In this document: in pieces, positions 1,386 to 29,143 of the stretch
Layout: the number at the start of each line of letters is the position of its first letter
Position numbering within the stretch: the first letter of the stretch is position 1
Assembly (NCBI RefSeq): GCF_000400465.1
Contig: NW_008806295.1
Span: forward strand, 120,001 to 152,000
Origin: Wallemia ichthyophaga EXF-994
Taxonomy: Eukaryota; Fungi; Basidiomycota
Direction: 5' to 3'
DNA: 32,000 bases
Made by a program: the position numbers and the translations under genes
The notes under the pieces: generated by a model
Seen by the model: the letters and a program-made list of their open reading frames with translations, nothing else
What the model was told of the DNA's origin: nothing
Databases searched by the model: none

Positions 1386-4300
1386 TCAAATCAAAGCTAT
1401 CCTGTTGTCTTTTATATTGAATATCAGCCAAGCCGACGTTTGGGTTTTCTGGTCGCGCACCCGCTCTCTTATCAGATGAAGGTAAGAGGATATGTGGGGT
1501 GAGCCAGCACCTAGAACCTGTTTAAACTTGTCGTCATCGCGTATCCAGTCGCTGTTCATTGCCATTCTATCAAAGACAACTGCTGGTACATCGACAGCCA
1601 GCATCGCCTTACTAGCATTTTCAAATTCTTGTAATGCACTCTCAGCTGTTTTGTGTTGCGTTTCGTGTTTTGCGTTAACATTGTAATTATAAATTGAGTA
1701 TCAAACTCACCTCTGTCACTCATTAGGGCCCGATTCCGCTTGTTAATCTTGTTCTTATTGTCGTCCTTTTTAAATGACCACGCTATCTCACTTGGCATGG
1801 CAAGATGAATATCAACACCAGGTGTATCTTTGTCATGTGTCCTCGATATTTCGTCCTGTGATTGGCGCAGCTTCCTCGATAGAAAATCAACGATATCATG
1901 TCGATCGACTGTGAAGAGTTAAGCTCAGTTATTAAAAAACACCTATAACCAACCACACACCTTCCTCCTCTGATTTTTTAGACAGCGTATTGCGCACCTT
2001 CAATACTGTACTGTTCGCCTTGAGCAGCACGAGATAGGTGATTCCCTCGCCTCTGCACCTTTCCATCAACATATCAGGACTTTGATATGTATGCGATCCG
2101 TCGTACATCTGTAGACATTAGCAAACCAACACCAAATCCCAAAATGACTTACCACGTCAGCTGAAATACCAGCATCCCATAATAGCGCAGCTACATCCAT
2201 CCTCTCGCTCATCATGCCCTGGTATGTATTACCAAAACTTCCAACATAAACATCACACCGACGAGGCATGTGGTTTTTCTGTCCAGGCGACATTTTCGAA
2301 TTGGGCTTCTTATTACTGGAATCCATCACACAACTAGCCAAGACATCTACATTAATGCGCAGGTTAACCATGAACGGAAGTGTTCTTGTAGTGTGGGACA
2401 GCTTTTTCAGAAGATTATCAGATCGCCCGCCGATTGCCATCGCTTCTCGACGTCCTTTAGCGACCCTCCTGCTCACATCAAGCATCAATCCAGATGCATA
2501 GTCGTCATACGAGTCATTCAATAACGTCGTCGTATCAAATACTATATTCCGGCGGCTGTGGTGGCGAGAGAAGAACTCAAATGTACTGTCTAGATCGCCT
2601 AACGTCTCTTTCAATTCATCTTTGTGATGCGGGAGTGCTTTCATCATCTCTGTAAGCATTGTTTTATGGTCTTTACCTCTGATCAGGAGATGCTCGAGCT
2701 CTTCTAGCCGCGCAACACTCTTGGTGTTGTCTATCTGCGCCGTAAGCTGGCTGCGTACATGTGGCATGCCCACTCCCTTTCCGAGCTGGTCGAATATTCC
2801 CAGTACTGCCGCACGTTTCTTGGTTGGGAAGAGTGAGAGGATGATTTCGACAATGACTGAGTGATTGATCCTGATCTCCCAATTTGAAGATATTACTGAT
2901 GGATGCTCTAATACCTTGTCAATTACTGACATTATCTCTCCCTCCATTGCCTTGGTAGTCGTTGGAGACACTATATCAAAATTGGCCTCCGATTCTTGAA
3001 TTGGTTGGCCACCCGCTACATTACGCTTAAAGCGGCCTCCCATCCAGAACCGTTTGGTGCGTGTAATGTTCTGCTTCAATATTATTCTGGTAAATCCTAC
3101 CAGACCATTGTAAGGTAGATGCACAACACAACCAGTGCTGTCGAGCAAGCTGACTACTTCTTTGTCTTTGATACCTTCACTTTCATCCGGCTTGGGAGAT
3201 AGGAGAGGCGAAGCGAGAGGCACTGCACCGTGTAGCTTGAATACCCAGTCTAGATGCTCCTGCACTAGGCGTATAATTGCATCAGGAGAAAGCGATCCTC
3301 CGCCAGTATCGTAGGTGTGGTATTGCAGTGCGTTGGGTGAGTTGTTAAATAGCCTTGAAACTAGTTTCTGGTATCGCGGTTGGTCGGGATGGAGAACTCG
3401 CAAAGCTTCTTCAAAGTACTCCTCTTCCATTGTCTCAGGTAGTAGACTTGAATGGAGCACCTCAGCGGCCGATGGCCGTTCACTTTGGTCGTGCTTGAGC
3501 ATCCACTCTATCAGTCTCTTTTCATCTACTAAAGTATCTGGAAATGTTGATGGAAACACCGGCTTTGGCTGTCTCATTTGATGCAGTACTTGGACTCTCT
3601 CCATACCCGTCCTGAACTTGTTGCACATTTCAAAAAAGATTATCTTGGGTGGGTTGTTAGACGACCAACAATAGATAGCTCACTTACGCCTAATGAGAAG
3701 ATGTCTACTTTCTCAGTATATCTTCCACTGCTATTTGCAATTTCCGGCGCAATATAAAGACTCGTACCAACAGCTGATGTAGTATCACTCGACTCATTGA
3801 CTAGCGCCCTATCAAATATCATGCTATTGTTAGAATCGTTCACTCCAAGTGTAGCAAGACCGAAATCACCAATCTTGACATCACCTTGTGCGTCGATGAA
3901 AATGTTGCTCGGTTTCAAGTCGCGATGTACGATGCCAAGAGTATTGATATAAGCCAGTCCGTCTAGTACTTGTCTGAAGATTTTCCAGCGTTCTTCTGTG
4001 CTTAACCCTTCTTCAAGCGACTCTGATAGAGTCAATTTCTCGCAGTACTGCATCTGTATGTACAAAATGCGCGAGTGAGATGTCAAGTTTTTCTTGTTTT
4101 GGTCTTGAGAGCTACGGCTACTCAAGCTACTGCTATCGCTACTAACTTCACTTTCATTCTCGTTCTCGCTCTCATCCTCATCGTCGTTCTCGCTATCCTC
4201 CTCATCACCCCCTTCGAAGAATATACCATCGTCTCTGCTTGCCGTCTTTGCAACACTGAGCGAATCATCAAACTTGGGATTGAGAAGTTTGTGCATAGAG

Positions 4301-6259
4301 AAGCTATAGCTGTCAGCAGTGCCCTTCTTTGTATTGGTCGCTTCACTCGTATTACTGAACGGCTGTGCTGCTGTTTGCGCTGCTTCCTCTATCCAGCATC
4401 CAAAATATCTAACCACAAATCTACTATTCAGCCTACTCAATGACAAAACCTCTCTGAAAAGCTTACTATCCGTATTAGGCTTGAGTCTGACTTTTTTTAT
4501 GGCATAAAACAAGCCATCTAGTCTGTTACGCGCTTTTACTACTTCTCCGAAGCCACCTTTTCCTAAATGCTCGACTTCTTCAAAGTCACTTCGGAATCTG
4601 CTGCTGTTGGAATGTTGACTCGTTGACTGCCAAAATGGATCGATGGGAGGTGGGGCGACAGACGCGGATGGTGTTAGAGGTGGTCTAGGTGTGGATGTTT
4701 TGCGAGCAGTGATTGATGTCGGTCTGGTTGTTGCCACACTGCAGGAGTTTTCTGAGGCGCTGTTTATCCTGTCTAGTATTTGAATTGCTGATCCGCGCTG
4801 CGAAGGTTTGGCTTCGAGCATGTAAGAAAGTATGTTGAGTGTCTGCTGTGGTATATCACCTGACTTATCCAATAATACTCCTGGTGATGGATAAGATGTC
4901 GCATCTAATCCAAACACCATGCTGATGAAACACACTCCTGCATCCCAAACATCTCTTTTTCTTGTAAATGATGAAGCTTCAAGACTTTCAGGTGCTTGCC
5001 AGGCTTCGTTTATAAATGTCTCGGATATTTTACGTTCGTTGATTGGATTCGAGCGGTGGAGATTGGAGATAGTTTTGGCGTATGATGGCTTGACAATTTT
5101 CAATATGCGACCTGGAGAGATGAGAATGTTTGAAGGGTTTACATCCATGTGCACTACGTCCAACTTATGCAACTCTTGTAAACCAGTGAGTAGTTGGACT
5201 AGATAGTTGGTAGCTAGATCTATACGGAGATTATCGCACGCGTGTAAAAGATCTTTTAGTGTATTCATACCACTGCTCCTTGAGTGCAAAATAAGCAACT
5301 CCCATATAACGCTTCCGTTGGATTGAGGATGAGGGCGCAATTTCGAAGCATAAATTCGTTCAACATTCTCACAATCTATTTTCGACATTACTTCTAGGGT
5401 GCGTGCAGTTTCCTGTAACTTCTTTTTACCTGCGCTCTTATCGTAGTATTCCGAATTGATGATGTACACTTGAAGTTCAAGGAGGTCGTCGGTCTTTGCG
5501 ACAGAGCAAAGATATGTCGAGCTAAGACCGTCAGAAGAGATGAGATTTCCGACATGAACAGTGAAATCGCCATCAAAGTTCTCTGTCCAGATATCGTGTC
5601 TTCTGTACTGCCTTTGGCGAGATATTTGGGTGTTCTGTTTCTCATTCTCAGAACGAATTTGTTCCTGTTTGCGCTTAATATCAGATTCGATTCGTTGTGC
5701 CAATTCATCAGCCTCGAGAGACTCTTTATGGCGTTTCTTTGCTTCGAAAGACTCCTCGCGCTGCATTTTTTCAGCTTGAACGGCGCTGAGACGCTCTTGC
5801 ATTTTAGTAGCCAAACTGGAGTTACCGATAATAGTGTGATTAGTAGAAATGTACTCCTGAACGAATATAGCGAGATCATAGAGCATAGGCTCGCCAAGAA
5901 GAGAATGCTTGGATTTATCAAGCAACTCCTGCGCTAGCTGATTACGCTGGTCTACTGAAAGACCTTTGGTGTTGCGAATTGAAAGCTGTGGGGGAACGTT
6001 TGGGTAAGTTTTGGGTATCTTAGCGTGTAGCTCGACGGCGACATGATTTTTAAGGTCCTCTTCTAAAGGCTGGAGCTGTATGATATATTCAGGTAGATTT
6101 GCAGCACCCTATACGCGACTGAGCTTATCTGGAGACATCTCGTCATCAGAAACGCACCTGCCACGCGGGATTTGAATTGGTTGCGACGGTGAATAGATCG
6201 CCATAGATGGCACTCAAAGCTTCGAGCTCATTCGATTGCACCTCGCGTAAGGTGTCCAT
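1386..6259 (-). CDS. GCN2: eIF2-alpha kinase GCN2 (RWD, pseudokinase, kinase, HisRS-like and C-terminal domains), about 1539 aa, 6 exons
   Basis: ATG at 6259 (MDTLREVQSNELEALSAIYG, RWD start). Kinase motifs: LGKGGFGEV, YAIKK, HRDLKPSNIF, DFGLA, TSAVGTSLYIAPE, with an acidic insert. These are followed by a HisRS-like region (GAVPL, EANFDIVS) and a Lys-rich C-terminal segment (KNKINKRNR). Introns at 6157-6109, 3687-3644, a 44-nt intron near 2110-2155, 1960-1909 and a 65-nt intron near 1650-1710. The spliced length is 4620 nt, a whole number of codons. Confidence 0.97.
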
Positions 6260-6298
6260 GGCGGTGGCTAATCAACCGGCGCTTTATTCCCGAACCCC

Positions 6299-7039
6299 AT
6301 GTCCGATAATCAAATGATTTGGGTTGGCAGGCATTGTAGCCTCCATACTTGCAGACAGACAGATTTCCTACCGAGTAATTGCGTTTACTGCCACAAAGAT
6401 TTCTGCGCTGAACACGCACCTCCTTCTTTGAATTTCAGCGATAGCAATCACTTATGTGATGCGTATAAGGCTTCAATAGAGGCTAAGAATGGCAGATCAA
6501 AGAACACGTACAATGAAATGAGTATTTGTGGCTTGGAGAGCTGCAATACAAAGCTAGTATCCCCTATTAGGTGTACAGAATGCGGCCTCAGCTTCTGCAC
6601 TTATCACTACCACACAAACACACATAATTGCAAGAAACATAGCAGGTTGGCTAATCAAGGGCGTTCTGCTGCGTCTAACAATGCTGGTTTGGCAGCACTT
6701 AAGCGCCTAGGACTGTCAAATAGCAGTCATACTGAACCTAAAGAGCCACAGTCACGGCCAGAACGACAAAATAGCCAAACAACAGAAAAGCAATCAAAGA
6801 GCGTTTTATCAAATATTATACCCAACATGGATAGAATACAGGCAGGCGGATCAACAAAATCACCAATTACCTCATTTAAAAATGATAAGAGAAGCAAGAG
6901 TGAGCGTGATTCGCAGCTGAAAGCACTACTAGAGCGAGAGAAGAAGGGCATTCTGTCATCAAATGATAAATATCGCCTTGCAGAGTTTAGAGCACTCGAG
7001 AACCAGTCGAGCAAGGGTAAAGAATGCAAGGTTCAATAG
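6299..7039 (+). CDS. Tandem AN1-type zinc-finger protein, ZFAND2/AIRAP-like, ending in CaaX-type CKVQ
   Basis: Single ORF of 246 aa. Finger 1 is CSLHTC..DFLP..CVYC..FC..H..H.C and finger 2 is CGLESC..CTEC..FC..H..H.C. The C-terminus is ECKVQ-stop. Confidence 0.88.
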   Translation: MSDNQMIWVGRHCSLHTCRQTDFLPSNCVYCHKDFCAEHAPPSLNFSDSNHLCDAYKASIEAKNGRSKNTYNEMSICGLESCNTKLVSPIRCTECGLSFCTYHYHTNTHNCKKHSRLANQGRSAASNNAGLAALKRLGLSNSSHTEPKEPQSRPERQNSQTTEKQSKSVLSNIIPNMDRIQAGGSTKSPITSFKNDKRSKSERDSQLKALLEREKKGILSSNDKYRLAEFRALENQSSKGKECKVQ

Positions 7040-24316: not shown

Positions 24317-25103
24317 TGATTGAGCGACTTCAACCCCGTTTCGAATCCGGCATCGCACAGTTTCATGTGAAAAAATGTCCAGAAATTAAAGGATTTACGT
24401 TGTCATTGTCAATAATCACTTGCGAAAAGCCCACAATTTAAGCACACAAGTCAAGTAGTAGTCAAATCAGATTTATGTTAAAGCAATGGCTCTGTCAAAT
24501 CTTCTGCTGCTTCTGATGTCTTCTTTAACAAATTATATTTTACTAAGAAAAGGCCTTATCGACGATGAAACGTTTAGACTGGTGTTATTTGTGAGAATGG
24601 GTGCAAGTGGCTGTATAAAATTCTCACCTGGATTTGGCACTACGAATTGCGTTTCAAGAGTCCTCAGCAGTTTCCTCGTTTTCAACTTGTCAATCTTCTG
24701 ATCTAACACATTCGTTTGTTCTTAAACCCAAGCTTAATTCTTCGAAACTCTAAGATGAGTTCCGGGGCAGGTGATAAGTAAAATCGACCGAGGAAACAAG
24801 AAAGAAGTTGTACATCTTTTATAGCGGGAGGAAATAACGAAGCCTAAAAATTTTGATCGGAAGTGGAAAATAAGTATAAATGTAGGTTGTAAATAATACA
24901 CAGATTTACACTGGTCTACGCCCCTGTTCGATTCCTGGGAAGAAAAGGGGCTACCGGTGACAAACGAGCCCCATGACGACGACATGCGCAGCCGTAAAAG
25001 TACTTGTTTGATATCATGGACTTGTGCGGGAGAACCTCTTTTTTGTCCAACATCACTAAAACAGTTAAATGGCAGGAGAAAGATTAATAAATTCATTAAG
25101 AAT

Positions 25104-26251
25104 TCACAACAGAGTGTAGGATTTCTTCAGGCCTAAGCGCTCAATCGTCTTTACCGGCATACAGTATACTGGATCAACGCGTTCGATTTCGGGGTATCCG
25201 AGCATTGAAAGGCCTGGGGAGGAGTGAGCGGGTGTAAACAGTAAACATACCACACCAACCTGCTACACCGAATAGGGTATGGAACACGTCAGACACATCA
25301 CCGGGTCTATCTGCTATACCACCGCAATCTGGATCCTGTGCGCTGAGTATGAATGAAATTAGCTTGTCTTTGTTTATCCAGTGAAGTCTGTGAAGGATAC
25401 TGAGAGCAGAGAGCACCCACCACGAGTAGCAAACCTGTTTTTATCGTTAGATAAGAGTGAAAGGGAATTTCAAACGTCTCACATCTTCCTGCTTCTGTGG
25501 ACGGCCATTGAGGCCACCATTCTGGACTTGTCTTTCCGACAGCCACCAGCTGAGGTTGTCTGTGTGTATGATATCAAGTCTGTCTATAATGGCTAGTGCG
25601 GCGACAGCGGTAAATACTGTGTGTGCTGTGTGTTAAGCTGGTTCACATAGAAACATCCCTCTCACCTTGGCCAGAGTGAGTTTCAGCGCCAATGTTGTTA
25701 CCGAAACCGCCATCGAAGTTTATGCATTGAGTGAACCAACTAACTATCTTTTGTTTAATTGAAGTGCCCGATTCTACTTGATCTAGTCTGTCTAGTGCGC
25801 CCAACAAACTCAAAGTGCTGATAGCGCAGTATGTAAATCTAGTATCAGATTCACCCCACTCGTCTCCGGTGAAAAAGCCTTGATTGGATGGTCTTAACTG
25901 GAGTATGTAATCGACGACCTTGCTAGTGTCTATTTTAGCCTCCTCAACGGCATCCAAGGTAATTAAGATCTGTATCCCAGATAAAGTGGACAGTATATGT
26001 GTATCGTGGTTGGGATGGCTGCTAAAGCCGCCATTGCTTGAATTCCAGCAATTTCCAACGTATTCAATCACCGCGCTTCTATCCAACGCGTCTATTCTAC
26101 CAAGTAAAGATAATGATGTTATAGCCCAGTAAATTCCATTCAAACGGAGGTGCTCTGTCAGGTGATACGATAGTGTATTCTCCGCTCTCCCCAGGTTCAC
26201 GATATACTCCACGTGTTTATCTGCATTTAATTTCGCTGTACTCTCACTCAT
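25104..26251 (-). CDS. BET2: Rab geranylgeranyltransferase (type II) beta subunit, about 334 aa
   Basis: [96 protein letters not shown] and VDPVYCMP. Introns at 25665-25617, 25482-25435 and 25259-25214. The spliced length is 1005 nt. Confidence 0.96.
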
Positions 26252-26259
26252 CCACGCTG

Positions 26260-27096
26260 ATGTCAGAATTTAACAAGTCTTGTGATATTTCCAACAATTC
26301 CTCAAAATCCTCGAATAAATCTTCCCTTAACATACACGGCCTTCCTAAGAAGAAGTTCTATAGGCAAAGAGCTCATGCGAATCCTTTCAGCGATCATCAC
26401 CTACAAGTCCCTCTCCACCCTTTGCACAAAGACTGGTCCACTCATTTCCCTGCTTTTTCTGATTCAAATGCACGCGTTGAAATGGCAGACGTTGGCTGTG
26501 GCTTTGGTGGTCTTATCATTTCACTCGCTCCAAAATTCCCCAACTCTCTCATCCTAGGTATGGAAATACGCCCACAAGTTACGCAGTATGTGTCCGATAG
26601 AATAGTTGGCTTGCGCAATTTGGCCAAGACGGGCCAGATTGATGTCCCCGATAAGCTCCCCGATCAGCAGCAAGGTAGAGGCGCATACGAGAATGCCTCC
26701 GTAATAAGGGCAAATGCGATGAAATTTCTTCCAAACTTTTTCCAAAAAGCTCAACTCAAAAAGATATTCTTTCTCTTCCCTGATCCTCACTTCAAAGCGC
26801 GCAAGCATAAGGCGAGAATTATAACGCAAACGCTGCTTTCCGAGTATGCCTACGTGTTAGCACCGAATGCCACGCTTTTCCAGATCACTGATGTACCCGA
26901 CCTCTTCAGCTGGATGCAAATGCACCTGGAAAAACACCCTCTGTTTGAGCAAATTCCCGATGAGGAGCTCACCACAGAGGACCAAACCGCGCTCAGCTGC
27001 GTCAAGAGTGAGACTGAAGAAGGCAAGAAGGTCACGCGTAACGGCGGTGGCAGACAATGGGCGACTTGGCGTCGAATCCCTGATCCACCTCTCTAA
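26260..27096 (+). CDS. TRM8: tRNA (guanine-N7)-methyltransferase catalytic subunit, 278 aa
   Basis: LPKKKFYRQRAHANPFSDH, DVGCGFGG, LGMEIR, RANAMKFLPNFF, FPDPHFKARKHKARII and ETEEGKKVTRN. The ORF-track start at 26173 is GTG. The only in-frame ATG ahead of the conserved core is at 26260. Confidence 0.96.
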   Translation: MSEFNKSCDISNNSSKSSNKSSLNIHGLPKKKFYRQRAHANPFSDHHLQVPLHPLHKDWSTHFPAFSDSNARVEMADVGCGFGGLIISLAPKFPNSLILGMEIRPQVTQYVSDRIVGLRNLAKTGQIDVPDKLPDQQQGRGAYENASVIRANAMKFLPNFFQKAQLKKIFFLFPDPHFKARKHKARIITQTLLSEYAYVLAPNATLFQITDVPDLFSWMQMHLEKHPLFEQIPDEELTTEDQTALSCVKSETEEGKKVTRNGGGRQWATWRRIPDPPL

Positions 27097-27304
27097 ACTT
27101 GTACCCTAGATTAGCGCCTTTAAATAGTGTCTTAGATTAGTAAATTAGATGATTCATTGATTATAGTTGTATGGCTTGGTACTTATATTCTGCTTCGCAA
27201 CTGAATTTGCCCTAATGACGCCATTTGCATTCCTATCGTCTTAGCACGGAGGACCGACGAGTTGCCGAAGAATCATCACCACGACACGCACCACTCACAT
27301 CGAA

Positions 27305-29143
27305 ATGCTCATGTACACAGACAGCAGCCCAGACGACAAGATGCAATTCAGCAGTCGGCGATCGACAGTGCACTCCCGCCGGGGTCTAGTGAGTACATCG
27401 CAGCCACTAGCGAGTCAAGCGGGGGTGAAGGTGCTCGATCTGGGCGGAAATGCGGTAGATGCAGCTGTAGCCGTTGCAGCCGCCCTCAACGTGACTGAGC
27501 CAAGCTCGACAGGCATTGGCGGGGACATGTTCCTTCTCTACTACGCAGCGAGCGAGCGACGAGTGTACGGCTTGAATGGCTCTGGCCATTCTCCAGCCGC
27601 GCTCACCCGCGACAAGGTCCATTCTCTCCGTCTGCACAACGATGCAGGCACCCTCCCATTCGACTCGATTCACTCTGTCACAACGCCAGGCGCGGCTGCC
27701 GGGTGGTGCGACGCTGTGGAGGCGTTCGGGTCCCACACCCTCACTCTCCACCAGATACTCGATCCTGCGATCCGCCTTGCGCGTCATGGGTACCCCGTCC
27801 ACGAGCTTACGGCGGCGCAGTGGCGCCAGGCCGAGGAGCAACTCCAGCGCGCTTCTCCAAATGCCCACGAGATGCTCCTCGACGGACGTGCGCCGCGTGA
27901 GGGCGAGATCATGTATATGGTGGGTGCACTTGCAAAAAATACTGGCATGTCTCACTTTCTCACAACTCAGCCCAACCTCGCGCGCACATTCGAAGAGCTC
28001 GCACAGCACGGCAAAGACGGTTTCTACAGGGGGAGAGTAGCGGACGAGATCGTGGGGCTCGTGGCGAGTCGCGGTGGGCTGCTCTCGCACTCCGATCTCG
28101 CCGCACACCGCAGCGAGTTCGTCGAGCCGCTGACATACACGTATGCGGGCGAGTATGTGGTGCACGAATGCCCACCTAATGGCCAAGGAGTAACTGCGTT
28201 GATAGCGCTGGGTATACTTGAGTCATGCGAGCGTCTCGGCCTCCTGTCAGCTCCGCTGCTTTCTCTCCCCCACAACGGCACAGAGTACCTCCATTTCCTC
28301 ATCGAGAGTCTCCGGCTGGCGTTCGCAGACTCGAAGCGATACACGTGCGACCCCACCTTCTCCACTCACAACACCTCCACTCCCACTCCACCCTTCGATT
28401 ACACCAAGCTACTCGCGCCCGACTATCTGGATGCTCGCGCCAGGTTGATTCACCCGCACAAAGTGAGCAGCGTGCAGCACGGGGCACCAGAGCACTCCTC
28501 AGACACTGTTTATTTCACCGTCGCTGATGAACACGGCAACGTCGCCTCCTTCATTAACTCCAACTACGCAGGTTTTGGCACGGGTGCTGTGCCCCGTGGA
28601 TGCGGTTTCACCCTCCAGAACCGCGGCGCGGGTTTTGTGTTAGAGAAGGGACATCCAAACGAGCTCGATGGGGGGAAGCGTCCTTACCACACTATTATAC
28701 CGGCTATATGCACGCTTAAGAGCACCAACGATATCTTTCTCAGCTGGTCCGTTATGGGTGGCTTCAATCAGCCACAAGGTCAATTGCAGACTTTCTTGAA
28801 CATCCTTAGAGGCCTTTCGCCTCAGGAGGCTGTCGATAAGGAAAGGTTCTGCATCGGCGCTATCAAGCAGGCTAGAACTCCTAATCCCCCTGTCCCGCTC
28901 AAGCAATCCGCACTGCAGGGTCAGATGCACGATTCAGATATCAACACAGAAGTTAATATGGAGGAAGGCGTCGATGAGATAATCTTGGAAGAACTGAAAA
29001 GAATGGGTCACGATGTGACTATTGCGAGGAAAATGCAGAGACAGGTCTGTGGCCGTGGTCAGATCATTCAGAAGACTGCACACAATGTCTGGTCAGCTGG
29101 CAGCGATATGCGCGCAGATGGTTGCGCTATGCCGCAAGTCTGA
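27305..29143 (+). CDS. Gamma-glutamyltransferase-like Ntn hydrolase (YwrD/HpxW-like cytosolic subfamily), about 595 aa after splicing
   Basis: STSQPLAS..GGNAVDAAVAVAAALNVTEPSSTGIGGD, CPPNGQG, SSDT (nucleophile Thr), SFINSNYAGFGTG, LQNRGAGF, RPYHTIIP, VMGGFNQPQGQ and SDMRADG. There is no signal peptide or TM anchor. One stop-free 51-nt intron lies at 27920-27970. Confidence 0.93.
   Translation: MLMYTDSSPDDKMQFSSRRSTVHSRRGLVSTSQPLASQAGVKVLDLGGNAVDAAVAVAAALNVTEPSSTGIGGDMFLLYYAASERRVYGLNGSGHSPAALTRDKVHSLRLHNDAGTLPFDSIHSVTTPGAAAGWCDAVEAFGSHTLTLHQILDPAIRLARHGYPVHELTAAQWRQAEEQLQRASPNAHEMLLDGRAPREGEIMYMVGALAKNTGMSHFLTTQPNLARTFEELAQHGKDGFYRGRVADEIVGLVASRGGLLSHSDLAAHRSEFVEPLTYTYAGEYVVHECPPNGQGVTALIALGILESCERLGLLSAPLLSLPHNGTEYLHFLIESLRLAFADSKRYTCDPTFSTHNTSTPTPPFDYTKLLAPDYLDARARLIHPHKVSSVQHGAPEHSSDTVYFTVADEHGNVASFINSNYAGFGTGAVPRGCGFTLQNRGAGFVLEKGHPNELDGGKRPYHTIIPAICTLKSTNDIFLSWSVMGGFNQPQGQLQTFLNILRGLSPQEAVDKERFCIGAIKQARTPNPPVPLKQSALQGQMHDSDINTEVNMEEGVDEIILEELKRMGHDVTIARKMQRQVCGRGQIIQKTAHNVWSAGSDMRADGCAMPQV

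Follow-up and report, generated by a model that had tools for sequence, protein, structure and literature searches.

Yeast and mammals offer well-known cases of bidirectional promoters and of head-to-head overlapping gene pairs, and ultra-short 5' untranslated regions (UTRs) are found in Giardia and in intracellular-stage Encephalitozoon. We know of no evidence for ultra-short leaders in basidiomycetes. For the compacted genomes of microsporidia, both very short leaders and transcripts that initiate within upstream genes are on record (PMC3629993, citing Williams 2005, Corradi 2008). The halophilic basidiomycete Wallemia ichthyophaga has a genome of 9.6 Mb, 73.6% of which is coding (PMC3849046). 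In the literature searched we found no account of UTRs or overlapping transcripts in Wallemia and none of run SRR23314750, and the 2013 W. ichthyophaga genome paper reported no UTR data.

The window analysed here is a 32-kb (32,000-nucleotide) stretch of the genome of W. ichthyophaga EXF-994. Within it BET2 and TRM8 stand head to head, and direct reading of the plus strand gives CAT at 26249-26251, CCACGCTG at 26252-26259 and ATG at 26260-26262. The two genes lie on opposite strands with their 5' ends facing, and their ATGs, 8 bp apart, fall well inside the 1 kb (<1 kb) within which head-to-head pairs are defined; with 8 bp between the coding sequences (CDSs) no coding nucleotide is shared, and these are not overlapping genes in that sense. 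The same junction was present, identical, in 20 W. ichthyophaga contigs (14 + 6). It is genuine and species-wide, and it separates two intact, functional housekeeping genes. The features at the locus are as follows.

25104..26251, minus strand: BET2, Rab geranylgeranyltransferase (GGTase) beta subunit, 334 aa (PDB 6O60_B, E=1.8e-49; Pfam PF00432).
26251-25666, 25616-25483, 25434-25260 and 25213-25104, minus strand: BET2 exons (splice model).
26222..26248, minus strand: variable N-terminal tail of Bet2, codons 2-10 (SESTAKLNA), from which the GP motif of relatives has been lost.
26249..26251, minus strand: BET2 start codon (CAT on plus), from direct reading, with relatives within one codon and public models in agreement.
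26252..26259, no strand: 8-bp spacer CCACGCTG between the start codons, from direct reading; invariant in 11 compared strains.
26260..26262, plus strand: TRM8 start codon, from direct reading; the sole in-frame ATG from the TAG at 26122-26124 to the conserved LPKKKFYRQRAH.
26270..26272, minus strand: in-frame TAA (TTA on plus), 21 nt upstream of the BET2 ATG, from direct reading.
26260..27096, plus strand: TRM8, tRNA (guanine-N7)-methyltransferase catalytic subunit (m7G46), 278 aa, intronless (PDB 2VDU; Pfam PF02390).
26263..26340, plus strand: N-terminal tail of Trm8, codons 2-27, Ser/Asn-rich and poorly conserved; a candidate BET2 leader and start site, its location as such being predicted.

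The identity of Bet2 was clear from its homology to Rab GGTase beta, which ran from residue 7 onward and was far closer to the GGTase-II beta subunit (6O60_B, E=1.8e-49) than to farnesyltransferase beta (5e-14) or GGTase-I beta (2e-10); the prenyltransferase alpha-alpha toroid repeats (PF00432) were present. The first 195 residues form a single minus-strand ORF from 26251 with no second Met among them, and the four-exon spliced model of 334 aa ends at the C-terminus like its relatives. The EXF-994 reference protein (EOQ99081.1) and the NCBI models of several strains likewise give 334 aa from the 26251 ATG, and in W. mellicola CBS 633.66, which was annotated separately, the BET2 start is placed equivalently. 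Trm8 matched yeast Trm8 (2VDU, E=7.9e-82) over residues 27-277 and human METTL1 (7U20, E=3.8e-71), with the Methyltransf_4 fold (PF02390) and similarity over its full length. Its (K/R)KxYRQRAHxNP motif, present as LPKKKFYRQRAHANPFSDH, and its SAM-binding glycine motif ADVGCGFGG both align with yeast Trm8, and the 278-aa product differs from the annotated W. ichthyophaga protein at one residue (S/N, position 217); public annotations adopt the TRM8 start at 26260 as well. The frame upstream of the TRM8 ATG is open back to the TAG at 26122-26124 and contains no ATG, and beyond residue 1 there is no Met until M74, within the conserved fold. Within the species BET2 carries 15 synonymous and 8 non-synonymous changes and TRM8 carries 5 and 1, from which it follows that purifying selection acts on both genes. 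The earlier note on this DNA had named both genes, both start codons and the 8-bp gap, together with the TAA 21 nt upstream of BET2 and the lack of any other in-frame ATG before the conserved LPKKKFYRQRAH of TRM8; direct reading and homology bear out each of these.

The pairing extends beyond W. ichthyophaga. The gene order BET2, TRM8, gamma-glutamyltranspeptidase was kept in all the Wallemia or Wallemia-like loci recovered, and the head-to-head arrangement was kept in six loci other than that of the window. Both proteins start at equivalent positions in the relatives, with N-termini whose lengths match within a few residues, and spacers were compared together with the distance between two anchors, the KHV codons of BET2 and the GLPK codons of TRM8.

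W. ichthyophaga (window): spacer 8 bp; anchor to anchor 139 nt.
L017, Wallemia: spacer 32 bp; anchor to anchor 148 nt.
L014, W. mellicola: spacer 40 bp; anchor to anchor 174 nt.
L002, W. sebi complex: spacer 40 bp, identical in sequence to that of L014; anchor to anchor 174 nt.
L001, W. hederae: spacer 144 bp; anchor to anchor 290 nt.
L018, W. hederae-like metagenome contig: spacer about 150 bp; anchor to anchor 296 nt.
L013, AT-rich relative: spacer 336 bp; anchor to anchor 455 nt.

Tight BET2/TRM8 pairing is ancient and genus-wide with 8 bp as its extreme, and in three lineages the DNA is far too short for a classical interval with two promoters. W. hederae is the sister species of W. ichthyophaga (PMC6738226). 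The junctions of L017 and W. mellicola align with one another (p<0.0005), whereas that of W. ichthyophaga gave no significant alignment with either (p=0.36 and 0.88); the junction was therefore rewritten in W. ichthyophaga. Given that the anchors are 139 nt apart here and 148 nt apart in L017, the 8-bp gap may have arisen by deletion or by movement of the TRM8 start upstream into the old spacer, both being possible. W. ichthyophaga TRM8 has also lost three introns seen in L001, L014 and L017.

The annotated intervals around the locus measure 195, 788, 208, 122 and 762 bp, and published genome figures (PMC3849046) work out at about 373 bp of non-genic DNA for each gene. Under a constraint-free exponential model about 2% of intervals would be 8 bp or less, so in statistical terms a gap this short can occur. 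What makes it unusual is that two promoters and two leaders must normally fit into a divergent interval. Its interest is mechanistic rather than statistical. The earlier note had described the junction as the extreme of a pattern repeated in the window, and this was upheld when genes in the first half of the window were identified from their ORFs, which gave a second tight pair.

6257..6301, both strands: GCN2 ATG at 6259..6257 (minus), a 39-bp spacer, and the ATG of an AN1-type zinc-finger ORF at 6299 (plus), from ORF reading.

The RWD domain of this GCN2 matched PDB 1UKX (E=3.6e-14) from residue 2.

Evidence on transcripts came from a relative. Over 5.4 kb, contig L002 (run SRR23314750) shares 92.7% identity with genomic DNA of W. 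mellicola and lacks exactly ten GT..AG introns of 42-49 nt, in five genes and on both strands; as the ten introns are precisely absent, L002 must be RNA-derived. It is a single 8.1-kb contig that merges adjacent transcripts and runs continuously over the 40-bp BET2/TRM8 spacer. Logan assembly was presumably made with a de Bruijn graph at k=31, a setting at which joining the BET2 and TRM8 transcripts requires about 30 nt of shared RNA cover. This continuity suggests overlapping BET2/TRM8 5' ends or read-through RNA in the relative, and could also stem from genomic DNA traces, pre-mRNA or read-through rather than from crossing leaders; any overlap could sit wholly within the 40-bp spacer. Were leaders of similar length used in W. 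ichthyophaga, transcription would have to start at least about 20 nt inside the partner CDS. The earlier note had proposed overlapping sense-antisense 5' ends, and of that proposal the overlap gains indirect support from an unbroken spliced contig over the homologous spacer, its occurrence in W. ichthyophaga itself staying a prediction. No RNA-derived W. ichthyophaga contig was found by exact protein look-ups or among cluster members, and neither the junction of W. ichthyophaga nor the spacer of W. mellicola gave a match when scanned against metagenomes. Between L002 and W. mellicola the spacer showed 0/40 mismatches against a third-position divergence of 15.8% (P about 0.001); the spacer is thus functional DNA in that lineage.

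As the locus has no room for two leaders or for a conventional bidirectional promoter, we favor crossing transcription units, and consider it probable that each leader starts within the CDS of the partner gene. The earlier note had reasoned that leaders and core promoters must lie within the partner CDS unless leaders are of 8 nt or less, and that logic is sound. The divergent intergenic region has collapsed to 8 bp. The TRM8 mRNA would start within the first few dozen nucleotides of the BET2 CDS and the BET2 mRNA within the N-terminal coding tail of TRM8. Such mRNAs would have complementary 5' ends, and their initiation complexes would be rivals for one stretch of DNA. The DNA doing double duty would encode the least constrained parts of the two proteins, which in Bet2 amount to about 10 residues and in Trm8 to about 27. 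We infer the positions of the start sites, the overlap of transcripts in W. ichthyophaga and the competition between initiation complexes.

Several features of the flanking coding DNA could be read as embedded signals, of which one is listed here.

26180..26259, plus strand: pyrimidine-rich stretch (60-75% C+T in 20-nt windows), antisense to BET2 codons 1-24; a candidate for the core promoter and leader of TRM8.

The last 30 nt before the TRM8 ATG are 70% pyrimidine, in the top 5% among 30-nt windows. No plus-strand ATG occurs in any frame at 26118-26259, the TRM8 sense strand having none in the 143 nt before its start, and on the other side the 81 nt that precede the BET2 start contain no ATG on the BET2 sense strand. 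These ATG-free stretches and the pyrimidine tract fit embedded leaders; each is a tail event of about 5-25%, individually weak and suggestive only. The hexamer CACGTG at 26210-26215 was weighed as a possible promoter element and dropped, since it varies among strains of the species and relatives do not have it.

The Trm8 tail was a further candidate, the earlier note having supposed that this extension exists mainly as the BET2 promoter or leader. That proposal did not survive comparison: all the relatives have such a tail, of 26-35 residues, whatever the spacer length, including those with 144-bp and 336-bp spacers, and yeast Trm8 has one too, so the tail is not "mainly" a BET2 promoter. In the relatives Trm8 starts MPPKR or MAHKRD and reaches SSLN..GLPKKKFYRQ after 16-25 residues; in W. 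ichthyophaga it starts MSEFNKS and reaches the equivalent anchor after 20. Composition alone sets this tail apart. Ser or Asn make up 14/27 of its residues, and the first 90 nt of TRM8 have a GC content of 36% against 47% for the whole gene. A similar drop is seen at the TRM8 5' end in L017 (32-bp spacer), a smaller one in W. mellicola (42% vs 47%) and none in W. hederae. The Ser codons of the tail make the TRM8 sense strand pyrimidine-rich, and not the sense strand of BET2.

The foremost rival is that one or both transcripts start inside the 8-bp spacer or on its border, with leaders of about 8 nt or less that barely overlap. Selection at synonymous sites bears on this. The earlier note had suggested looking for reduced synonymous substitution at both 5' ends, and no such signal appeared: excess synonymous conservation across species in the first 50 codons relative to the rest was +0.067 for BET2 (p=0.13) and -0.016 for TRM8 (p=0.64), in a test of low power with about 25 informative codons per gene end, and synonymous differences between L002 and W. 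mellicola were not depleted in the first 60 codons. Nor was the SNP-free stretch at 26214-26354 (11 strains) longer than other gaps in the locus. The lack of synonymous constraint in the flanking coding ends fits nothing essential lying there, and it is the spacer itself that shows constraint in the W. sebi complex. Near-leaderless mRNAs would also suit a compact genome (CDS 73.6% of 9.6 Mb; PMC3849046), and very short 5' UTRs are documented for another compacted genome of fungal lineage (PMC3629993). Against these points, neither BET2 nor TRM8 has a usable downstream in-frame AUG. Cap-scanning eukaryotes skip the first AUG when the leader is shorter than about 12-20 nt. Direct reading also showed a weak context at both starts, with a pyrimidine at -3 that differs from most relatives, and no element resembling TISU was seen at either start. 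A near-leaderless transcript would still leave its core promoter within the partner CDS, and in the relative the RNA-derived contig L002 implies that the two sides of the junction have some 30 nt or more of cover in common. We therefore regard near-leaderless mRNAs as an unlikely explanation that nevertheless deserves consideration.

A second rival is that one of the 5' gene models is wrong, through a non-AUG start or an upstream spliced exon, and that the true gap is larger or the arrangement different. Annotation in the genus gives some cause for this: in annotations of W. mellicola strains TRM8 is joined to the gene that follows it and BET2 begins 252 bp too far in, the BET2 product annotated in W. 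hederae has 613 aa, and W. ichthyophaga Trm8 lacks the MPPKR/MAHKR start common to all relatives. These points are outweighed by the sequence around the starts, since the plus strand lacks an ATG in any frame throughout 26118-26259, an in-frame stop lies 21 nt upstream of BET2, and the frame upstream of the TRM8 ATG has no homology to anything in the relatives. Both N-termini are within a few residues of the length in relatives, and the introns of the genus (42-66 nt) are too short to pass the partner gene. A mistaken 5' model is thus very improbable. There is next to no chance that an assembly or sequencing artefact removed part of the intergenic DNA: NCBI strain assemblies of W. ichthyophaga are reference-guided and so not fully independent (PMC6738226), but 4/20 of the agreeing junction contigs are Logan assemblies made straight from reads, reference-free and with strain-specific SNPs nearby, and because all four carry the identical junction an assembly deletion is excluded. 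The hidden upstream exon, downstream start and assembly deletion that the earlier note had named as grounds for abandoning its reading were therefore looked for and drew no support.

Crossing transcription units could be taken further than we take them. In a free-living fungus, core promoters and leaders of two essential-type genes might lie wholly inside the partner CDSs, the mRNAs might be obligately 5'-complementary and initiation mutually exclusive, and both tails might be shaped by the transcription and translation signals of the partner as much as by protein function; we hold this fuller version to be doubtful. If it were true, shaping by partner signals would explain why W. ichthyophaga alone rewrote both tails, with loss of MPPKR from Trm8, loss of GP from Bet2 (the N-terminus in relatives being M(E/D/QD)GP..LL..KH) and a Trm8 tail that became AT-rich and Ser/Asn-rich.

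If start sites do lie within the partner genes, this locus would be a natural test of how much non-coding DNA a pair of RNA polymerase II promoters needs, and would show CDS doubling as promoter and leader and the effects of mRNAs that are complementary at their caps. The series of 8, 32, 40, 144 and 336 bp in one genus, with a second pair at 39 bp in the same 32 kb, makes the question tractable by comparison. A practical consequence is that annotation pipelines mis-call genes at such tight junctions, as the fused and truncated models in relatives demonstrate.

Among known systems, the classical bidirectional promoters of yeast and mammals resemble this locus in that divergent genes have one short control region, and here the pairing is conserved genus-wide. 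In those promoters the start sites are about 100-200 bp apart and point outward, giving transcripts that do not overlap. This geometry is impossible in W. ichthyophaga because the ATGs are 8 bp apart, and at that distance start sites must cross or leaders must be of near-zero length. Mammalian head-to-head sense-antisense pairs (PMC2335118) are likewise opposite-strand genes with overlapping 5' ends, an overlap that for BET2/TRM8 is predicted; in mammals it usually arises through long 5' UTRs or first introns and not through both coding N-termini. The ultra-short-leader mRNAs of Giardia, Entamoeba, intracellular-stage microsporidia and mammalian TISU genes would account for the near absence of upstream non-coding DNA, although the BET2 and TRM8 starts lack a TISU-like context. 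A further parallel is found in the microsporidia (Encephalitozoon cuniculi, Antonospora locustae) and nucleomorphs, in which compaction has reduced intergenic DNA so far that transcripts begin or finish within neighboring genes and the RNA of adjacent genes is physically continuous, as in L002. Wallemia differs from them in being free-living and intron-rich with a 9.6 Mb genome, neither an intracellular parasite nor the remnant of an endosymbiont, and in that its case is specifically 5'-to-5' between start codons, with an overlap that is predicted. The BET2 and TRM8 gene models were already public; the crossing-leader mechanism is plausible, and the arrangement itself is an extreme but precedented product of genome compaction.

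The 8.1-kb contig L002 (Logan SRR23314750 contig 10976), from a W. sebi-complex species, spans the whole locus that contains the head-to-head pair BET2 and TRM8. L002 is an RNA-derived assembly of spliced sequence: ten introns of W. mellicola genomic DNA, spread over both strands and five genes, are absent from it. Six adjacent genes were joined in this contig, across gaps of 38, 40, 82, 100 and 229 bp. This merging suggests that transcript overlap or read-through is pervasive in Wallemia.

At the BET2/TRM8 starts (window 26252-26259) position -3 is a pyrimidine on both sides, C for TRM8 and T for BET2; in most relatives both genes carry a purine there. A second very tight divergent pair, with start codons 39 bp apart, was seen elsewhere in the window, and its GCN2 start has a strong context (GCC ATG G):

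Window 6257-6301, minus strand: GCN2
Window 6257-6301, plus strand: AN1-type zinc-finger gene, the partner of GCN2

Three relatives carry a gene of about 291 aa between TRM8 and the gamma-glutamyltranspeptidase gene:

L002 (W. sebi-complex), 2845-3720: ~291-aa gene
L017 (a Wallemia relative), 1994-2884: ~291-aa gene
W. hederae (L001), about 5162-6037: ~291-aa gene, without annotation
Window 27097-27304: the corresponding interval in W. ichthyophaga

In the W. ichthyophaga window TRM8 and the transpeptidase gene are only 208 bp apart, and a tblastn search of the whole window with the ~291-aa product gave no match. The gene has been lost or relocated in W. ichthyophaga.

Automated annotations of the BET2/TRM8 locus are wrong in the W. 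mellicola strains (L014-L016) and in W. hederae. Among them, TRM8 and the transpeptidase gene are annotated as one fused product of 1075 aa, the BET2 models of the W. mellicola strains pass over the conserved ATG and begin 252 bp further downstream, and BET2 of W. hederae falls within a fused 613-aa product.

The transpeptidase gene (window 27305-29143), which is syntenic in W. ichthyophaga, L017, L002 and W. hederae, has a GC content of 57.5%, against 46–47% in the adjoining genes. This contrast is repeated in L017 (58.5% against 46%) and was not seen in L002 or W. hederae; gene conversion, paralogue replacement and expression-linked bias are all candidate causes.

The BET2 stop codon and a 269-aa gene are 788 bp apart (window 24317-25103), with nothing annotated as a gene between them, whereas the counterpart of this interval in L002 is only 38 bp; W. 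ichthyophaga therefore does not uniformly have the more compact genome. TRM8 (window 26260-27096) has lost all of the three introns whose positions are conserved in W. hederae, W. mellicola and L017, and one of the three is present in the AT-rich relative L013. BET2 retains three introns in W. ichthyophaga, compared with four to five in its relatives.
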